Origin: Heteronotia binoei | Taxonomy: Eukaryota | Direction: 5' to 3' | Length of the DNA stretch: 64,000 nt | NCBI RefSeq assembly: GCF_032191835.1 | Contig: NC_083227.1 | Coordinates: 126,170,001 to 126,234,000, forward strand | Part shown: one piece after another, positions 3,936 through 42,878 of the stretch | Layout of the letters: each line of letters opens with the position of its first letter | Position numbering within the stretch: the first letter of the stretch is position 1 | Notes under the pieces: generated by a model | What the model saw: the letters and a program-made list of their open reading frames with translations, nothing else | Databases searched by the model: none | What the model was told of the DNA's origin: nothing | Made by a program: the position numbers and the translations under genes

Positions 3936-4147
3936 GGGGAGGGACGGTGGCTCAGTGGTAGAGCATCTGCTTGGGAAGCAGAAGGTCCCAGGTTCAATCC
4001 CTGGCATCTCCAAAAAAGGGTCCAGGCAAATAGGTGTGAAAAACCTCAGCTTGAGACCCTGGAGAGCCGCTGCCAGTCTGAGAAGACAATACTGACTTTG
4101 ATGGACCAAGGGTCTGATTCAGTATAAGGCAGCTTCATATGTTCATA
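3936..4147 (+). mobile_element. tRNA-derived SINE (Squam2/Anolis-SINE2 type)
   Basis: A box TGGCTCAGTGG, B box GGTTCAATCCC, body shared with copies at 7206-7397 (-) and 23407-23621 (+). Confidence 0.85.
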
Positions 4148-4610
4148 ATTTTTATGGACTAAATATTTCTGCTTCTCAGAATAGCAAGTAAGTGCATCCA
4201 TAATGCCAGTTATCTGGATCATGACCAGACTTTATAAAATATAAACTATATCAAATTTCTATTGTTCTGTAATTTTTGTCCTTCATATCTGCCTGTATTG
4301 TAGAATTTTCTTAATGTGTGTAGACAGCTTCATTAGCCTTTCAGGATACTTTTGTCCCCTATTGCAGCTGACTCTGATTTGCAATCCACCTTGCTTCCAC
4401 AATTGCATATGACCTGTTCATACCTCTTCTTCATACACATACTCCTAGCCCAGAGGCACTTCATGTATTTCATGGTGGCAAACCTGTCTTTGCCATAGTG
4501 AGCACAACTTAGAACTGTAATGTCTGAAAAAGCGCATAACCCTAGTGCTTGGTATTCAGGCCTGCTTATTAAAACCAACCCCAACATTGGATCAAGAGGG
4601 AAATGGGGTA

Positions 4611-5235
4611 TCTCTCTCTCTCTCTCTCTCGGCTTGACTTCGCGAACGAAGATTTAAGAAAAGTGCACGTCTGCTGCAGGCTCGCTGGTGGCTGACAAGA
4701 CCAATGCGGGACAGGCAGGTCCGGCCACAGTGGCTGCAGGGAAAAGTCTGATTTGGGGTTGGTGCTGTAGCAGTGCGATTCTTCCTCAATCTCCTTTTGT
4801 CCTCAAGACCAGCTATGCGTGCGTTCTCAAAAGAAGAGACAGCCTGGTGGATGGTGTGCCTCCATGCTTTGCGATCTGAGGCTAGGTCAGACCACTGGTG
4901 ATGGTTAATGCAACAGGTACCAAGGGATTTCTTCAAGGAGTCCTTGTACCTCTTCTTTGGTGCCCCTCTATTTCGATGCCCGGTGGAAAGTTCGCCATTC
5001 AGGGCAATCTTGGGAAGGCGGTGGTTTTCCATCCTGGAGATATGCCCTGCCCAGCGCAGCTGCGTCTTCAACAGCAATGCCTCGATGCTTGTAACCTCCG
5101 CCCGCTTGAGGACTTCAGTGTTGCTCACAAAGTCACTCCAGTGGATGTTGAGGATGGTGCGAAGGCAGCGCTGATGAAAGCGCTCAAGGAGTCGCAGGTG
5201 ATGACGGTATAAAACCCACGATTCGGAGCCGTAGA
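4611..5235 (-). mobile_element. 5'-truncated RTE-clade LINE (ORF C-terminus with C2H2-type finger, (GA)n tail)
   Basis: Open frame IYGSESW...QLRWAGHISRMENHRLPK...FPCSHCGRTCLSRIGLVSHQRAC followed by a GA microsatellite tail. Confidence 0.9.
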
Positions 5236-5398
5236 TGCAAGAATTAATGGACACGGAATCTATTGATATATTTTTAAGAACAGAGCTTATTGAATTTCTA
5301 TCATTCTTTCCTTCTACCTCTCCAGTCTTTTCCTTTTCTTTCCTTCACCCTGTCTCTATGTTAGATTTTAGATATACCATTCTTCTTTCTGATTCCAG

Positions 5399-5509: not shown

Positions 5510-5977
5510 GTAACAAGCCGTCATGCTGCCACTACATCCCTGTTGCCCCCATTCAGACTCTTCTGAACTTTTCATTTCTACTTAACCACAGTGAAATAAG
5601 TAACCTCTCCTTCTGCCATAACTCTGATCATAACAATAGCCTACTTATACTGCTTTGGATTTTAAAATGGGGAGGGGGGGTAGGGAAGTAAGGTGAAGTT
5701 GGCAGATTTAGTTTGATCCCATGCAATTCTGTGCCACAAAACTCTTTGCATTGTTGGAGCCCACAAATCATTCTTGTCTAACCAGCTATCATCATTTTGC
5801 TGATAGGAACAAATCAGAATGACTCATGAGATGCGTATTGGAGAAAAACATTGCCAGCAATTTCTAATGGGTCAGAATGTACATACACATAAAGGGCTAC
5901 ATCTGAACACTTAAAAAGCATAAAGAGAATGCATTAAAACCATTCTCTGGCAATGTTTTCTGTATGCTTCTTTCTAG

Positions 5978-6143
5978 GTCCCATCTTTGTCATCACTGAG
6001 TATTGTCCACATGGGGACTTGCTCAATTTCCTGCGAAAAGTAGCTGAGAATCTCATAATCCAGGATTTGACCGTGGACTCCTCTTTTGATAGCACGGTGG
6101 CTGACTATAAGAATATGTACCTTGGGAAGAAATATGTCCGAAG
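5978..6143 (+). CDS. CSF1R: CSF1R exon 14 (hinge, start of kinase insert)
   Basis: ttctag|...|gtaaga, 166 nt, PIFVITEYCPHGDLLNFLRK...ADYKNMYLGKKYVR; keeps the DYKN and KKYVR tyrosines typical of CSF1R. Confidence 0.96.
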
Positions 6144-6745
6144 GTAAGAATTGAAGCCATGTGTCACCAAGGGTAAAGTTCAATGAGATAGAGAGACTTC
6201 ATTCACTTCATATGTTTAGGAATCACATATAATTTGTCACAAAAAAATAAAAATAAGTTCCTCTTCAGTCTGAGCAATCAACAGATCACTCAGTCTACTG
6301 TGTTACATTTTGCTATTATGTTTTACAGTATTTCACTTCAGCATCTCACCCTTAATAAACTGGGACTGAATCCCAGCTATACTAATTGCACCACTTTCGT
6401 CGGCAATAATTTATGAATGTAAATAACGGAAAGCAGTTTCAAACAGTAAATGCCTGTCTTTGTGGATTTGAAATAAATGTGCCTGCAAATCCCTTCCAAA
6501 GAAATATATATAAGGGACAGAAAAACATACAGTGGCAGATCTCTTCACAGCCAGATGCACAGAGGCAAAATCTTACATAACAGGTTGTTATATCAGGCTG
6601 TTTTTTTGCCAGAGACAGCAAAAAAGAAAAGGCAATTTTAAGTAAGAGTTCGCTGTCAAACTCCTGATGTCTGCCTGCCTCACCTGTCCATGAAAAATAT
6701 TGGATGCCTACAAGCTTATCTGAGGCACATGATGTGCTTAGTATA

Positions 6746-7102
6746 TAGGGTTGCCAGATACCTCTTTGTAACTGATGGGGGGACTTACCAGGAGAAAGAG
6801 AAAAGCCCAGGCCACATTGCTGGTATCACACAGGATGTGATGTCATCACGCTGCACTGTTGCTGCAACACTCAGGTGTTTGGGCAAAAACTCTATGGTAA
6901 AATGGCTTCTTCCTTAGAGCTTTTGCCCAAATAGCTGAGCTTTGCCTGGACATCACTGGCATGATTGACATCACTTCCTGTGTGACACTGGAGATGTGGC
7001 CTCTTTCTCCTGTTAAGCCCTCCTGTTGGCCAGGTGATCAGCAGCTGGGGCAGGTCCTGGTGGTGGGGGACCTCCACTTCCACCAGGGATCTGGCAACCC
7101 TG
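6746..7102. mobile_element. Older hAT-type MITE
   Basis: TAGGGTTGCCAG...CTGGCAACCCTG ends; no clear TSD. Confidence 0.65.
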
Positions 7103-7205
7103 TTCTGGAATGCATTCAAACAATAGAGTGTTTGCCAAGAATGGGGTCCAGCAGAGACTGTGAGCTATACTATGCACTTCGAAGACCAGCCAGCACAGCT
7201 CTAGA

Positions 7206-7397
7206 ACATATGAACATATGCAGCTGCCTTATACTGAATCAGACCCTTGGTCCATCAAAGTCAGTATTGTCTTCTCAGACTGGCAGCAGCTCTCCAGGGT
7301 CTCAAGCTGAGGATTTTCACACCTACTTGCCTGGACCCTTTTTGGAGATGCCAGGGATTGAACCTGGGACCTTCTGCTTACCAAATTCCCTCCCCAA
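7206..7397 (-). mobile_element. Squam2-type SINE with deletion in the tRNA head
   Basis: Reverse complement of 3936-4147 over most of its length. Confidence 0.85.
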
Positions 7398-7708
7398 TTT
7401 GGTACACCATAATAGATGTGATTTTAAATGTCATATCCTTGGCCATTAATTTGGCTTTAAAAAACCCAGTTACACACTTAGACATTGCACACTCATTGAA
7501 ACAATTGGAAAGAGGAGAAGAATGATCTGCATTGCAAGAAACTGTAGTATGATTGACTCTGGTCAAGTATCCTCTGAGTTGCATAAATCAAATACTGCTT
7601 TGATTTTCTTTTCTTTTTTTTTTGAAGTATTTTTGCTGTATGGCTTAAAGGCCATAGATACTACATTGTTGTTAACTTTTGCTCTCTGGTTGTTTTTCTT
7701 TCATTCAG

Positions 7709-7794
7709 TGATAGTGGATTTGGAAGTCAATGTATAGGAGACAACTATCTGGAAATGAGACCTGTGGCAACATCAGTCTCCATGCCAGCAAAAG
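7709..7794 (+). CDS. CSF1R: CSF1R exon 15 (kinase insert, YxxM PI3K docking site)
   Basis: cattcag|...|gtaaat, 86 nt, DSGFGSQCIGDNYLEMRPVATSVSMPAK (human [20 protein letters not shown]); phases 2 and 1 fit the neighbours. Confidence 0.95.
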
Positions 7795-7899
7795 GTAAAT
7801 AGTCAAAGGAGGAGGATGCATGCTTTGCACCATTGGTGCTTAATATTCAAAAGGTGGTAGCATAACTTTTAAACTCTGTGGGCTGGGGGAAAGTTGATA

Positions 7900-8450
7900 G
7901 GAGCTGGGGAACTGCCATTTCAGACTGACTGAAAGGGATGATGCAGTAAATTCTGAGTGGAAATGAGCTAGCAATTGAGCATGAGAGCAGAGAATAAATG
8001 ATGGACATTTGAGAAGGGCCAAGGGAGTTAAAATGACGTGTAGGCTACAAAGCCAAGATGTAGGGAGCTGAGATGTTTCATGTTAAAAGGCTACTTAAAT
8101 ATAGTAGCATTTCAGAAACCCGGTGGAAGGAAGAAAATCAAATGGGATGTGGTTATTTCTGGATGATAGGGCAGGGAAAGGCATGTTGTGGGTGGTGTTG
8201 CTCTGCTATCATAGAGGCTATCGAGTCAAATGTAGTAGAAATCATAAGGGGAATATATCCCCTTGAACCACTGTGAGTTACCATAACCTAAGGGTAACTT
8301 AGAAGGGGGGGGGGGGTACTGTCACTTGCCTGATGGAAGCAATGAACAAGAGTGGCAGGAGAATTTCCAAGATGAGCACAAGCTATATGGTGTTGCACTA
8401 GTGTGTAACATCATTTCATTGTGAAACCAGAAGCGAAATCATCACATCTT
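7900..8450 (+). mobile_element. Decayed CR1 ORF2 endonuclease fragment
   Basis: atttcagaaacccggtggaaggaagaaaatcaaatgggatgtggttatt aligns by eye to atttcagaaacttggtagaatgaggagaatcagtgggacacggtgatt in the CR1 near 34.2 kb. Boundaries approximate. Confidence 0.65.
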
Positions 8451-8544
8451 TGTGACACTCTAGGATTCACTCAAACCTCTTTAAACCATAGAGTTTTGTG
8501 TGAATCCTAGATTGATGCACTGTTGTAGTGATAGTTTCATTCAG

Positions 8545-8630
8545 TGATAGTGTATTTGGAAGTCAGTGTATAGGAGACAACTGTCTGAAAATGAGACCTG
8601 TGGCAACACCAGTCTCCATACCAGCAAAAG
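8545..8630 (+). pseudogene. Duplicated, donor-dead copy of CSF1R exon 15 (pseudoexon) inside a 178-bp direct duplication (7699-7876 copied at 8535-8712)
   Basis: Direct comparison: same acceptor tttcattcag, 6 exonic substitutions (G>V, silent, Y>C, E>K, S>P, M>I) and donor GT changed to AT. Confidence 0.92.
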
Positions 8631-10069
8631 ATAAATAGTCAAAGGAGGAGGATGCATGCTTTGCACCATTGGTGCTTAATATTCAAAAGGTGGTAGCATA
8701 ACTTTTAAACTCCTTGGGCTTCCAGTGCAAAACTGGAAGTGGTGTCATGCATTGGTGCAATGCCAAATTGCCTCCTCATTCTTCTCCCATCATCTTATCT
8801 CACAGCAATGGATGAAAGGGGGCACAGGCTGGGTGGTCTTGCTAGAGTGCTGTAGTGTGAGAGCTGCCCCTCCCCACCTGGTGATCTTAAGACAGAGAAA
8901 GAAGTGAGGGAGATGACTAAAGTAAACAAAGATTGTACTGTTTACTGTAATACCACAAAAATTGGTCACTGCTTTGCCCGTGGTTGTTGTTGAAATAATG
9001 CACTCCTGTGGAAGAGCAACATTGGATCCAACTTGCAAGACTGGGACACACAGGACATTCAGGAGCGGACAAGAAAAGAAAGATTATTTCCTTTTCTGTG
9101 AACAGGTTTCATGATACCCTTGTGGTGTCAAATTCAAGTGTTTTAACCAAAATTCCATATTAATGTCCATTATGCTGGACTTTGTTTACTATTGTGTGCT
9201 GATTAGGGATGGGCATGAACCGGTCCACAAATCTAAATCTGTGACAAAAATTGCCTTGTTCATGCAGTCTTGCCTGTTACAAACCTCTCATGACCCTCCA
9301 CATGGTTTTTGGAGGTTTGGGTGCTGTATGTTGGCAGTATTCATGGCAGACAAGCTGGCGCAGATCAATTATGATTGTTTAGGCAACAGGAGATGGACTT
9401 CTGCAGCCCTGGAAACACCAATAGCAGCCCTCCAAAGCTCAACAGGCAGTGCTGGCTTCCAATAAGAGAGCTCCCATTCTGCTCTATGGGAGCAGAACGA
9501 TATGCAGTAGCTCACATACAGCCAGTTTTTCCTGTTTGCAGCAAGTATGCTGCATGGCAGTTAGAGGCAGAGAGGGAAGGGAATTGGAAGTCATTCTTCA
9601 GTGTGAACAATAGGATCAAGGGTGCTTACTCAGGATTCTCAGGCACCTATCCTTCTGCTCATGCCGAGCAGAGGGGCTTAGCTTCATTGGTGCCTCGAGC
9701 CTGCAGGGGGTCCTTTTGACACACTACTGAACCTGTGGCTGTGATTTCCCCAAACAGCACTTTCCTGGGGTACCTGTTTTGGAGAGCTGTAACTCAGCCC
9801 CCCCCCCCCCCCCCAGTCTAATCCTCACCAAACTTGGAGGGCAGGTAGAGGAGAGTCAGCTGGAGACAAGATGTGAGTTTGGCATATCTAACCCTAGGGG
9901 AAGACTGTTCTACCACATCACTAACCTCACAAAATGAACCAGTTCAGTAAAATGGAAGGTTCATGTGGCCCAAGAAACCTGGTTCGTACCCACCCTAGTG
10001 CTGAGGTTCAATATTATCCTGCTGGGGAGATGCCTTCTGTTGCTCACCATGAATTTTTCTCCAATCAAG

Positions 10070-10185
10070 GACACAGCTCAGATTCAGAAGAGGAAAAGGA
10101 GAACAAACCAGTTCTTGGCCTGCGTGAATTGCTACGGTTCTCCAGCCAGGTGGCTCAGGGAATGTCTTTTCTTGCTTCAAAAAAT
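10070..10185 (+). CDS. CSF1R: CSF1R exon 16 (end of kinase insert)
   Basis: tcaag|...|gtatgt, HSSDSEEEKENKPVLGLRELLRFSSQVAQGMSFLASKN; an alternative in-frame acceptor would start at 10082. Confidence 0.9.
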
Positions 10186-10310
10186 GTATGTCATCCTCCA
10201 AATAACTTCTTATTAGCAAAATGATTGACATTAGGAGCAGAGAGGCAAAGGGAGATATTCTACAAGACTTGAAAAAGAAACAGAGTGTGCGTGTGAGACA
10301 TGCCGCCTCA

Positions 10311-36767: not shown

Positions 36768-38470
36768 TGCACCTCAAAAAGGATATTATAGCACTGGAAA
36801 AAGTGCAGAAAAGGGCAACTAGAATGATTAAAGGTTTGGAACACTTTCCCTATGAAGAAAGGTTAAAACGCTTGGGGCTCTTTAGCTTGGAGAAACATCG
36901 ACTGCAAGGTGACATGATAGAGATTTACAAGATTATGCATGGGATGGAGAAAGTAGAGAAAGAAGTACTTTTTTCCCTTTCTCACAATACAAGAACTCGT
37001 GGGCATTCAATGAAATTGATGAGCAGTCAGGTTAAAATGGACAAAAGGAAGTACTTCTTCACCCAAAGGGCGATTAACATGTGGCATTCACTGCCACAGG
37101 AGGTGGTGACGGCTACAAGCATAGCCAGCTTCAAGAGGGGACTGGATAAAAATATGGAGCAGAGGTCCATCAGTGGCTATTAGCCACAGTGTATGTGTAT
37201 GTGTGTGTGTGTGTGTATGTATGTATATATGTTTGTGTGTGTGTATAAACACACACACATATTGGCCACTGTGTGACAGAGTGTTGGACTGGATGGGCCA
37301 TTGGCCTGATCCAACATGGCTTCTCTTATGTTCTTATGTTCACTGTAACATGACAGTCAGCACTTCAGAGCACTGTCTGTCAGACCCAGACTCCTACTGT
37401 GGAAGCTGACTGGGTGATTTTCAGCCTAATCAACCTCACAGGGTTGTTATGTCGATCAAAAGGGGGAAAGGAAAATTATGTAAGCGGCTTTGGTCCCCAC
37501 TGTGGTCCCCAGGTGGAGGCTGCAGGGAGTGGGGGAGGAGATGAAAAGCTAAAGTCAGAGGGGCAGATAAAGGTAGGTTGACATACGTTGCCTCCCTCTA
37601 TCTTTCCCTTCCCAGCCCCTTCAAGGCCATGACACTCACCCACAGCAAATTTCTAACACCCGTTGTATTTCTCCCCACAACGGTTATTATTACTAGTGTA
37701 TTCATATTTTAACAACTTATTTATTCAAATTTATTTTAAGGAGGCTTGAAGGTGAAAACGGCAGAAAGCTGGGCATAATTCTTAGAAACCAATAAATGAA
37801 ACTTTCTGCAGATTTCCCAACTCCATGCCTTCAGAAGAGTGCGCACAGAAGGTAGTTCCCAGAGCTAACAAGGACAGCACAACAGTGTGAACTGTGCCAT
37901 AGGCTTACCACAAAATTTCAGTGGTTCCCCAAAGGTGGTACTTTTGCCTTTTCCATGACACTCCCAACTGTGGGACATAAGGAGTCATGCAACTAAAACA
38001 AAGAATATTTAAAGCATTCTAGTCATTGTGGTTTGGAAGCCACGACTGAGCCTAAGGCTTGTTAGTACAAATCCTCTAATTTTGGAGCCTGGACCTTAAA
38101 ATAGTAGAAGGAAAAGGAGTTATTGAACCTGTGAAAGCAACTTTATACTCTGTCAGCAAATAATCCAATGACAGATCACCTTAGAGAACTCTGTGGAGCC
38201 TTATCTGCTCTGTACCTTGGGGCACTTCTAGTCACACTTGCCTGATATTGCAGCCTACAGCACTGCATGCAGCAGATATTCAGCCCTGATCTTTCAGCTG
38301 TCTCTACAGCATATCAACAGCCCCCCTTGCTAGGGTGGCCAGACCGTCCCGGTCTCCCGGGACTTTCCCGGTTCTGGCCACCAATTCCCGGCTCCCAGGC
38401 TGCCTATACCGGGACCATTACAAAGTCCCGGTATAGCCGGCGGGGAGCCGGCGCGCCACGCGTGCGGGCC

Positions 38471-38943: not shown

Positions 38944-39260
38944 NNNNNNNNNNNNNNNNNNNNNNNNNNNNNNNNNNNNNNNNNNNNNNNNNNNNNNNNN
39001 NNNNNNNNNNNNNNNNNNNNNNNNNNNNNNNNNNNNNNNNNNNNNNNNNNNNNNNNNNNNNNNNNNNNNNNNNNNNNNNNNNNNNNNNNNNNNNNNNNNN
39101 NNNNNNNNNNNNNNNNNNNNNNNNNNNNNNNNNNNNNNNNNNNNNNNNNNNNNNNNNNNNNNNNNNNNNNNNNNNNNNNNNNNNNNNNNNNNNNNNNNNN
39201 NNNNNNNNNNNNNNNNNNNNNNNNNNNNNNNNNNNNNNNNNNNNNNNNNNNNNNNNNNNN
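38944..39260. other. Assembly gap (317 N)
   Basis: Run of n preceded by a G-run. Confidence 1.
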
Positions 39261-41439: not shown

Positions 41440-42878
41440 AAATTTAAAATGTCAAACAGGGTTGCATTTTGGCTCCCTTTTTATTCAATCTCTTCCTTAA
41501 TGACCTGGCTATTCAGTTGTCTGGTCCTGACTGCCATAGTCCAAAACTCGGTGCATTACATGTACCCTTGTTATTTTATGCTGACAATACGATGATGCTG
41601 TTGTCCTGCTCTAGAGTGGGCTTAAGACGTCTGTTGTCCCGTTGTGTTCTGTATTTTACTAGTAATAAGCTCCAGCTCAATTATGAGAAGTCCAAAATCT
41701 TAGTTTTCTCAGAAAAGTGGAGACTTTACAAATGGGTTATTGATGGTAAAAAGATAGAGCAAGTCAAGTATTTTAAATATTTAGGTGTTTATTTTCAATA
41801 TAATGTGACTTGGTCTACCCATCGCAAGTATGCAGTGAAGATAGCTAACATCAGTGCATCTGCCATAGCTCGCTTTTTTATGAAAGAGGTAACCAATTTG
41901 TGCCAGCTGCCATAAAAATATTCAAAGCCAAAGTGATTTCACAACTTCTGTATGGCATCCCAATCTGGATTGGATCTTATGAAGGTGCTATCGAACGTGT
42001 CCAATCCAAATTCTTGTGTAAAATTCTGGGCATGCCAAAATGTGTCCCATATGCAGTTATCTGCTTAGAAACTGGCATGTCTTTAATGGTTACTAGTGCA
42101 TGGCTCATGACCTTCAAACTCTGGCTATGCTTGCACTACAACTCTGAACCAGGGAGCTATATCTCTCAAATGCTCTCTGAATTTAATTTGTCAAATTGGT
42201 CAGCACAAATTGAGAGAAAAATAAAAGCAATGGGTTTATCCCTAGAACTATTGTCCATGCTGTCCTTCACCACCACAGTCCAACAAATTAAAAACAGGTT
42301 GCTAGATATTGAGCGCCAAGATCTATACAGTCTGGCTAAGAAAACTTATTCCCCACTGAGTTTTGAGATCTCTCTTAGTACTGGGAAAATGGCCTCATAT
42401 CTATCCGTCTTGCAGGTGCCACAGCAGTGTAGAGCTTTTTCCCTTGCCAGATACAACGCCATGCCCTCTGCCATTCTTTCTGGCAGATTTAACAAGACAG
42501 CCTACTCAGTCAGATACTGTCTCTGTAAGCAAAAAGGTGTGGAGTCAGTTACTCATATTCTTCTTTATTGTAATTTGTATACAGATCTTTGTCACAAGTA
42601 TTTACATCCTCTTTTAGTTAGCATGGTTGATTGTTCTGATGCACTTAAGGTCTATAATCTTTTGAACGATACTTCATCTAGTGTCACTGAGAAAGTGGCT
42701 AAGTTTCTTTATTCTGTTTTAAAGGCACACCAGAGGATCTCATAGAAATAGTTTGTTTATGCTTTTCCTGATGTATATGTATGCAATCGTTCCATTTTAT
42801 CTTTTTTTTTAAAACCAATTTGCTCTGATATATACACCTATATATTTTATGCCAATAAAGGCTAACTTGACTTGACTT
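41440..42878 (+). mobile_element. 5'-truncated non-LTR retrotransposon (RT + C-terminal CCHC knuckle; RTE-X-like, clade tentative)
   Basis: VKQGCILAPFLFNLFLND, LLFYADN, ...RYCLCKQKGVESVTHILLYC; 3' AATAAA then (ACTTG)n tail. Confidence 0.85.

Follow-up and report, generated by a model that had tools for sequence, protein, structure and literature searches.

A probable lineage-specific pseudo-exon in CSF1R of the gecko Heteronotia binoei, inserted at an old intronic palindrome

Introduction

Unannotated copies of exons are frequently found in the adjacent introns of animal genes, and some of them become mutually exclusive exons (PMC9013439, PMC8373072). Unannotated intronic tandem exon duplicates were described by Letunic et al. 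2002, as summarised in PMC9013439, and human cases are treated in PMC8373072. The case analysed here concerns CSF1R of Bynoe's gecko, Heteronotia binoei, in which an exon of the kinase insert recurs within the following intron. It is located in a stretch of 64,000 nucleotides (hereafter the window; contig NC_083227.1, positions 126,170,001 to 126,234,000, forward strand), which corresponds to H. binoei CM063329.1, where the record position equals the window position + 126,170,000.

With the unannotated tandem duplicates the gecko copy shares its location in a neighbouring intron, the presence of exon plus splice-site flanks, and the strand, length and frame of its source, but it differs from them in its dead donor, in the lack of visible expression in thin RNA data and in its restriction to one lineage. 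Moreover, the duplicate is not strictly tandem because a stretch of 643 bp of native intron lies between it and its source. As in mutually exclusive exon pairs, the architecture would permit an in-frame swap (both exons have 86 nt and the same phase); in contrast to such pairs, the donor of the gecko copy is destroyed and a key residue is lost, which makes it a failed or never-used candidate. This residue is the tyrosine of a YxEM motif, equivalent to mouse CSF-1R Y721 and human Y723 in the pYVEM p85 PI3K site of the kinase insert (PMC5483887). The gecko parent exon carries the orthologous YLEM, whereas the copy, for which no expression was seen, reads CLKM. Regarding its origin, the copy resembles template-switch insertions, i.e., those attributed to fork stalling and template switching or microhomology-mediated break-induced replication (FoSTeS/MMBIR) and to polymerase-theta end joining, by its nearby cis template, direct orientation, 2-bp microhomology, absence of a target-site duplication, palindromic site and possibly a short extra templated stretch. 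It differs from these in that the mechanism is deduced from a single old event whose junctions have been open to later mutation, and in that 186 nt are long for a polymerase-theta insertion.

Results

The segment 7699-7876 is repeated on the same strand at 8535-8712 (offset 836), as was evident from reading the sequence, from a repeat finder and from ungapped comparison. Seven parent-to-copy differences occur within these limits: 7717 G>T, 7730 A>G, 7747 A>G, 7752 G>A, 7773 T>C, 7784 G>A, and 7795 G>A. An earlier interpretation made from the letters alone (the sequence-only reading) had reported a repeat of 7699-7876 located 836 bp downstream with the same seven differences, and translation reproduced the effects assigned to them (G>V, silent, Y>C, E>K, S>P, M>I, and donor GT>AT). 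A blastn search with 7400-9600 against the whole window found no third copy, and extended the match 8 nt beyond 7876/8712 to 7884/8720, resulting in a repeat of 186 nt with 95.2% identity. For comparison, the orthologous loci of Paroedura picta, Eublepharis macularius and Sphaerodactylus townsendi were used as outgroups, which represent three other gecko families. In alignment with Eublepharis and Sphaerodactylus, the extended part showed two further differences (7877 T/C and 7878 G/T), both of them intronic; the full repeat has 9 differences in 186 nt, 7 of which fall in the exon or the donor. A derived T at 7879, which in a five-sequence alignment is common to parent and copy and absent from the outgroups, indicates that the copied segment reaches at least 7879. 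The duplication comprises the following elements:

7699..7884, + strand: source segment of the duplication, in which the exon is preceded by 10 nt and followed by 90 nt of intron (ungapped comparison, blastn).
8535..8720, + strand: inserted copy of 7699-7884; the terminal CT is common to the target and constitutes a 2-bp junction microhomology.
7709..7794, + strand: working kinase-insert exon, 86 nt, encoding DSGFGSQCIGDNYLEMRPVATSVSMPAK including the YxEM PI3K docking motif (RNA joints with 0 mismatches; annotated protein; single orthologue in three geckos).
8545..8630, + strand: pseudo-exon, 86 nt, reading DSVFGSQCIGDNCLKMRPVATPVSIPAK, with five derived amino-acid changes including loss of the docking tyrosine (polarised with three outgroups; absent from the annotated protein).
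8631..8632, + strand: dead splice donor, AT, which is GT in the parent and all three outgroups (comparison, alignment).

The 86-nt exon of the sequence-only reading corresponds to 7709-7794. Its claim that this exon bears the YxxM docking tyrosine for PI3K agrees with the equivalence to mouse Y721 (PMC5483887) and with the conservation of the tyrosine, which was kept in 104 of 104 fetched CSF1R proteins from salamander to primates. That the copy reads CLKM instead of YLEM was likewise confirmed by translation, and the Y>C change is derived in the copy. Across the exon the annotated H. binoei protein reads ...YVRS, then DSGFGSQCIGDNYLEMRPVATSVSMPAK, then GHSSDSEEE..., with the copy left out. 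A search of the PDB with the exon peptide found this part of the kinase insert in no solved chain. In Paroedura picta the kinase-insert exon (its locus 37751-37830) is shorter by 18 nt, the residues ATSVSM being absent.

The alignment of orthologous introns that had been proposed along with the sequence-only reading was carried out with the three outgroup geckos; it allowed the changes to be polarised and showed that the copy is absent there. According to tblastn, the kinase-insert exon is single-copy in the Paroedura, Eublepharis and Sphaerodactylus loci. The Sphaerodactylus intron aligns to window positions 7618-8511 and then to 8736-9202, with 30 bp between the two blocks, and the Eublepharis intron aligns to 7648-8480 and again from 8719. 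The copy is thus missing from the orthologous site of both species, in which its flanks lie 30-50 bp apart. The Paroedura intron aligns to 7863-8366 and 8853-9202, the stretch between having been lost; this deletion of ~490 bp (its locus 42107-42129) removes the region that holds a palindrome in the other geckos. Since 7885-8527 is collinear with the outgroup introns, the apparent spacer between the two repeats belongs to the native intron, and it is the copy that was inserted; the limits of this insertion in the three-species alignment are ~8528-8718 (~191 bp). The insertion site is made up as follows:

7885..8527, + strand: native intron between source and copy, 643 bp (collinear with Sphaerodactylus, Eublepharis and Paroedura).
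8528..8534, + strand: filler of 6-7 nt at the left junction, (G)TGATAG, which matches 7708-7714 exactly and may have been copied from a template as well (three-species alignment).
8382..8527, no strand assigned: left part of an old imperfect palindrome around the insertion site, including the hairpin 8438-8480 / 8490-8532 (repeat finder; folding; outgroup alignment).
8719..8770, no strand assigned: right part of this palindrome, which resumes immediately past the insertion (alignment, folding).

A match of the filler's length within the source would be expected by chance with a probability of roughly 0.02-0.09 (hand estimate). No target-site duplication, terminal inverted repeat or poly-A was present at the insertion in the three-species alignment, and no other copies of its flanks were found in the 98 kb of local sequence searched. 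When the insertion was removed in silico, the site folded with an energy of -83.8 compared to a shuffle mean of -45.3 (z = -8.2). The imperfect palindrome of ~190 bp occurs in Eublepharis and Sphaerodactylus as well, its position being kept across three gecko families. Only sub-threshold matches of hairpin type were obtained with Rfam for 7600-9300 (mir-7973 with 29.7 bits against a threshold of 90), and the palindrome is probably an ancient foldback or a remnant resembling a miniature inverted-repeat transposable element.

Other arrangements of the repeat were considered and rejected. The spacer cannot have come in as an element with a 178-bp target duplication on either side, as it aligns with the introns of three other geckos; an 836-bp tandem duplication would require repetition outside the 186 nt, and there is none; and transposon-mediated exon capture is contradicted by flanks that are native intron common to the outgroups and by the lack of terminal repeats, target-site duplication and local copies. 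The marks at the junctions suggest instead that the insertion arose at a hairpin-prone site when repair or replication switched templates.

Polarisation with the three outgroups revealed that the copy is derived at 7717, 7747, 7752, 7773, 7784, and 7795, whereas at 7730 (silent CAG>CAA), and probably at 7878, the derived letter is that of the parent; the direction at 7877 is ambiguous. Thus, all five amino-acid changes took place in the copy, and the working exon took up nothing but a silent change. Parent and copy are separated by a pairwise distance of K = 0.05 overall (0.085 for exon plus donor, 0.02 for the intron), while the intron distance is ~0.29 between Heteronotia and Paroedura and ~0.35 between Heteronotia and the other two geckos. 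The insertion is therefore much younger than the split of Heteronotia and Paroedura, and from these distances its age may be put at roughly 7-17% of that split. With 6-7 changes in 186 sites of the copy and 2-3 in ~121 neutral sites of the parent, the rates of the two were indistinguishable (Fisher p = 0.49-1.0).

The concentration of changes in the exon deserves separate consideration, as the sequence-only reading had placed all divergence in the exon and donor and estimated the chance of this pattern at ~0.007. For the limits 7699-7876 the first statement is correct, but only because the repeat was cut 8 nt short: the full repeat to 7884/8720 contains the two intronic differences mentioned above. 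The underlying calculation, (87/178)^7, was arithmetically right (0.0067 when recomputed), but the full 186-nt repeat yields p = 0.01-0.06. In the pairwise comparison, where 7 of the 9 differences fall within the 87 sites of exon and donor (186 sites in total), p = 0.062, and p = 0.012 was obtained when sites were weighted by lineage, i.e., with intronic sites, being mutable in both copies, counted twice. All these p values are modest, the pattern having been chosen after the fact. At the true boundary the excess is marginal, so neither selection nor gene conversion is forced by it, and the clustering in the exon half is most probably a matter of chance or, at most, a weak effect. A TGCATG motif (RBFOX-type) is located 23 nt downstream of the donor in both copies (7817-7822 and 8653-8658); Paroedura has the motif, Sphaerodactylus has part of it and Eublepharis lacks it. 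Conservation is somewhat higher in the proximal intron than in the remainder, which would lower the parent-lineage divergence to be expected there.

In the gene as a whole, open segments on the + strand resemble the cytoplasmic exons of CSF1R. A phmmer search with the exon at 5980-6144 had human CSF1R kinase chains as top matches, and a query with the juxtamembrane exon retrieved full-length reptile CSF1R proteins. The genomic locus of the annotated H. binoei CSF1R protein is 100% identical to the window across 4601 bases. The phmmer matches and the annotated protein agree with the gene assignment made from the letters alone. Exon ends were set from the sequence and RNA joints, and the features relevant to splicing are, in addition to those given above:

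5978..6143, + strand: CSF1R exon upstream of the kinase-insert exon, coding for the end of the kinase N-lobe and the start of the kinase insert (phmmer; RNA joint 6143 to 7709 across GT..AG).
10070..10185, + strand: next CSF1R exon, 116 nt, from the kinase-insert end to ...FLASKN (RNA joint 7794 to 10070 across GT..AG; translation).
8690..8695, + strand: possible cryptic donor AAG/GTGGTA, the same motif being found in the parent at 7854 (sequence); splicing from the donor at 8690 would lengthen the exon to 145 nt and place a stop in frame.

At the donor, the copy reads AAG/ATAAAT and the parent AAG/GTAAAT, and the next acceptor after the AT donor is AG. Of the acceptor region no more than 10 nt were included in the duplication, and the polypyrimidine tract has 10/18 pyrimidines in the copy compared to 15/18 in the parent. 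Judged from these sites, the copy would have had a good donor and a poor acceptor at birth, and it now has neither. Translation showed that inclusion of both copies shifts the frame and leads to a stop 10 codons into the copy, also if the cryptic donor at 8690 is used, which bears out the frameshift that the sequence-only reading had foreseen for two included 86-nt copies. If the copy alone replaces the parent exon, the frame stays open and the docking tyrosine is missing. The 3' end of CSF1R was present in four RNA runs. One RNA contig (471 nt, depth 7), compared with 5900-10300, joins 6143 to 7709 and 7794 to 10070 with GT..AG borders and without mismatch to the upstream exon; it skips the copy, and its junctions are the same as those of the annotated protein. 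In the four runs, with a single CSF1R contig, there was no RNA depth on 7811-9133, which includes the copy, and there were no junction reads at 8690. Two of the runs consisted of raw reads (6% sampling), had zero CSF1R depth and hence were uninformative, so that the absence of reads on the copy is weak evidence. A protein search with the 40-amino-acid open frame of the copy gave no match.

The copy shows homology to a working exon, has lost a splice site of that exon and lacks a residue invariant in the family, as is characteristic of a pseudo-exon. Functional splice sites on both copies and conservation of both copies in relatives, which distinguish mutually exclusive exons, were not found.

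Several observations were made on other parts of the locus. Within CSF1R introns and the remaining window, a segment resembling a short interspersed nuclear element (SINE) at 7209-7384 was covered in each of the four RNA runs, at depths from the hundreds up to the hundreds of thousands and with numerous variant letters, and an inverted copy of it, 96.6% identical, lies 3 kb upstream at ~3971-4147. This element also accounted for the small shares obtained when sequencing runs were searched with the intronic stretch; neither of two such run searches returned a DNA run of H. binoei. On the minus strand at 4595-5344, in a CSF1R intron, a 250-amino-acid open segment resembles the C-terminal portion of the reverse transcriptase of a long interspersed nuclear element. 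A run of 317 N at 38944-39260 represents an assembly gap or a masked stretch.

The extracellular part of the receptor may also differ between geckos and other reptiles. All annotated gecko CSF1R proteins have 781-792 amino acids, compared to 956-974 in other squamates, turtles and birds, and by BLASTP the gecko signal peptide directly joins the region that matches Salvator residue 203. When residues 1-330 of six non-gecko CSF1R proteins were searched by tblastn against four gecko gene loci, nothing was found for ~26-195, which correspond to immunoglobulin domains 1-2. In the H. binoei CSF1R gene locus, upstream of the window, exon 1 is at locus position 1001-1075 and the first immunoglobulin exon was found at ~20500. 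These comparisons indicate that geckos may be without the first two immunoglobulin domains of CSF1R. The ligand contacts of this receptor involve domains 2-3, and a loss of domains 1-2 in geckos would thus be surprising. Among the hits listed by a literature search there was no paper on a loss of CSF1R immunoglobulin domains in geckos.

Discussion

The findings are best explained by a break or a stalled fork inside the old intronic palindrome, which would have occurred in the Heteronotia lineage after its split from the other gecko families compared. Repair would then have drawn on a same-strand template 830 bp upstream, from which ~186 nt were copied, namely the kinase-insert exon with 10 nt of intron upstream and 90 nt downstream of it. 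The product would have been a non-tandem intragenic duplicate exon with an intact donor and only 10 nt of the acceptor region. Subsequently the copy would have drifted, acquiring five amino-acid changes, the GT to AT change in its donor and the loss of the YxEM tyrosine, to become a silent pseudo-exon, while the working exon was presumably held by purifying selection and took up one silent change. We consider it likely, if by no means assured, that the copy is such a dead, lineage-specific pseudo-exon, formed by a template-switch insertion at the palindrome and neutral decay, and not a new isoform; on this account it would be evolving neutrally and would not be spliced at all.

Several points weigh against this account. 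The junction marks of a template switch are weak, consisting of a 2-bp microhomology and a filler of 6-7 nt at a single old event, and the insertion is known from the assembly sequence alone. The species compared belong to three other gecko families and include no close relative, which bears on both the age and the fixation of the insertion. The RNA evidence is thin, with one contig of depth 7, and rare inclusion of the copy is possible. Furthermore, if only changes in the copy lineage are counted, the excess in the 87 exon-plus-donor sites is more pronounced than in the pairwise comparison (p = 0.010 for 6/6 changes, p = 0.044 for 6/7), and parent and copy do not differ in the 81 nt that follow the donor, an identical run of at least 81 nt among 9 random differences having p = 0.05. 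A non-random process thus has some probability.

This identical block, flanked by differences at 7795 and 7877/7878, would be expected if the duplication were older than the intronic identity suggests and a short tract at ~7796-7876 had been re-homogenised by gene conversion, with selection possibly blocking tracts that carry the Y>C or donor changes. The run-length probability and the K values of exon plus donor versus intron are in line with such an event, but these statistics are marginal, concerted evolution would need a second species with the insertion, and repeats of 186 nt are short for efficient gene conversion; on balance we regard conversion as unlikely, albeit less so than the further alternatives. 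The excess of copy-lineage changes in exon and donor could alternatively be a product of selection against a harmful, frameshifting duplicate, in which the donor change and exonic changes, for example those abolishing splicing enhancers, were fixed by lowering inclusion. The donor was intact at birth, being GT in the parent and all outgroups, and inclusion of the copy leads to a stop after 10 codons. However, a single donor mutation suffices for silencing, the acceptor was weak from birth, the ratio of 5 non-synonymous to 0 synonymous changes fits neutral drift (~0.25, hand estimate 0.76^5), and the excess has p = 0.01-0.04 after post-hoc selection of the pattern, which leaves selective silencing a slim chance. 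Slightly slimmer still is the chance of a combination of both processes, in which the copy was spliceable and frameshifting at birth, the exon and donor excess is the trace of silencing selection, and the intron was kept identical by short conversion tracts barred from the exon in both directions.

The palindromic site, the microhomology and the filler, together with the adjacent double difference at 7877-7878 in an otherwise identical intronic block, would also be compatible with clustered changes made by error-prone repair synthesis during copying, in which case the copy would be very young. We deem this very improbable, since the parent itself has changed at two or more of the differing positions (7730 and probably 7878), so that time has passed since the insertion; in addition, 5 transitions versus 1 transversion resemble ordinary germline change, and an error rate of 3-4% is far above known repair-synthesis errors. 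With the copy known from the assembly alone, an assembly or haplotype artefact is conceivable as well, but the flanks of the copy are unique and collinear with the outgroups, it is 95% and not 100% identical to the parent, and it is ancestral at positions where the parent has changed (7730, probably 7878). False assembly duplications are typically of kilobase scale, unlike the 191 bp observed here, and an artefact is marginally less probable again than error-prone copying. The least credible of all alternatives is that the copy serves, or served until recently, as a mutually exclusive exon giving rise to a CSF1R isoform unable to dock PI3K, a decaying form of which the sequence-only reading had named as one alternative. 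Its length and frame equal those of the parent exon, and inclusion of the copy alone would be in frame, but the AT donor followed by an AG acceptor, the truncated polypyrimidine tract, the missing RNA depth and annotation, the absence of the copy from three gecko families and the invariant tyrosine in 104/104 CSF1R proteins all contradict this idea.

Compared with these alternatives, a templated insertion followed by neutral decay accounts best for the data. The asymmetry between exon and intron is largely a product of where the repeat boundary was drawn; if the combination of silencing selection and conversion were true instead, the locus would be a worked natural example of a genome disarming a harmful exon duplicate. 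There is no visible consequence for CSF1R signalling in Bynoe's gecko. In practice, the copy calls for caution in annotation and may be used as a phylogenetic marker within Heteronotia. It would represent a cleanly resolved and datable example of the birth of an exon duplicate by a nearby-templated insertion at a palindrome, and not as a tandem repeat from unequal crossover, and of its subsequent death via donor loss and drift.

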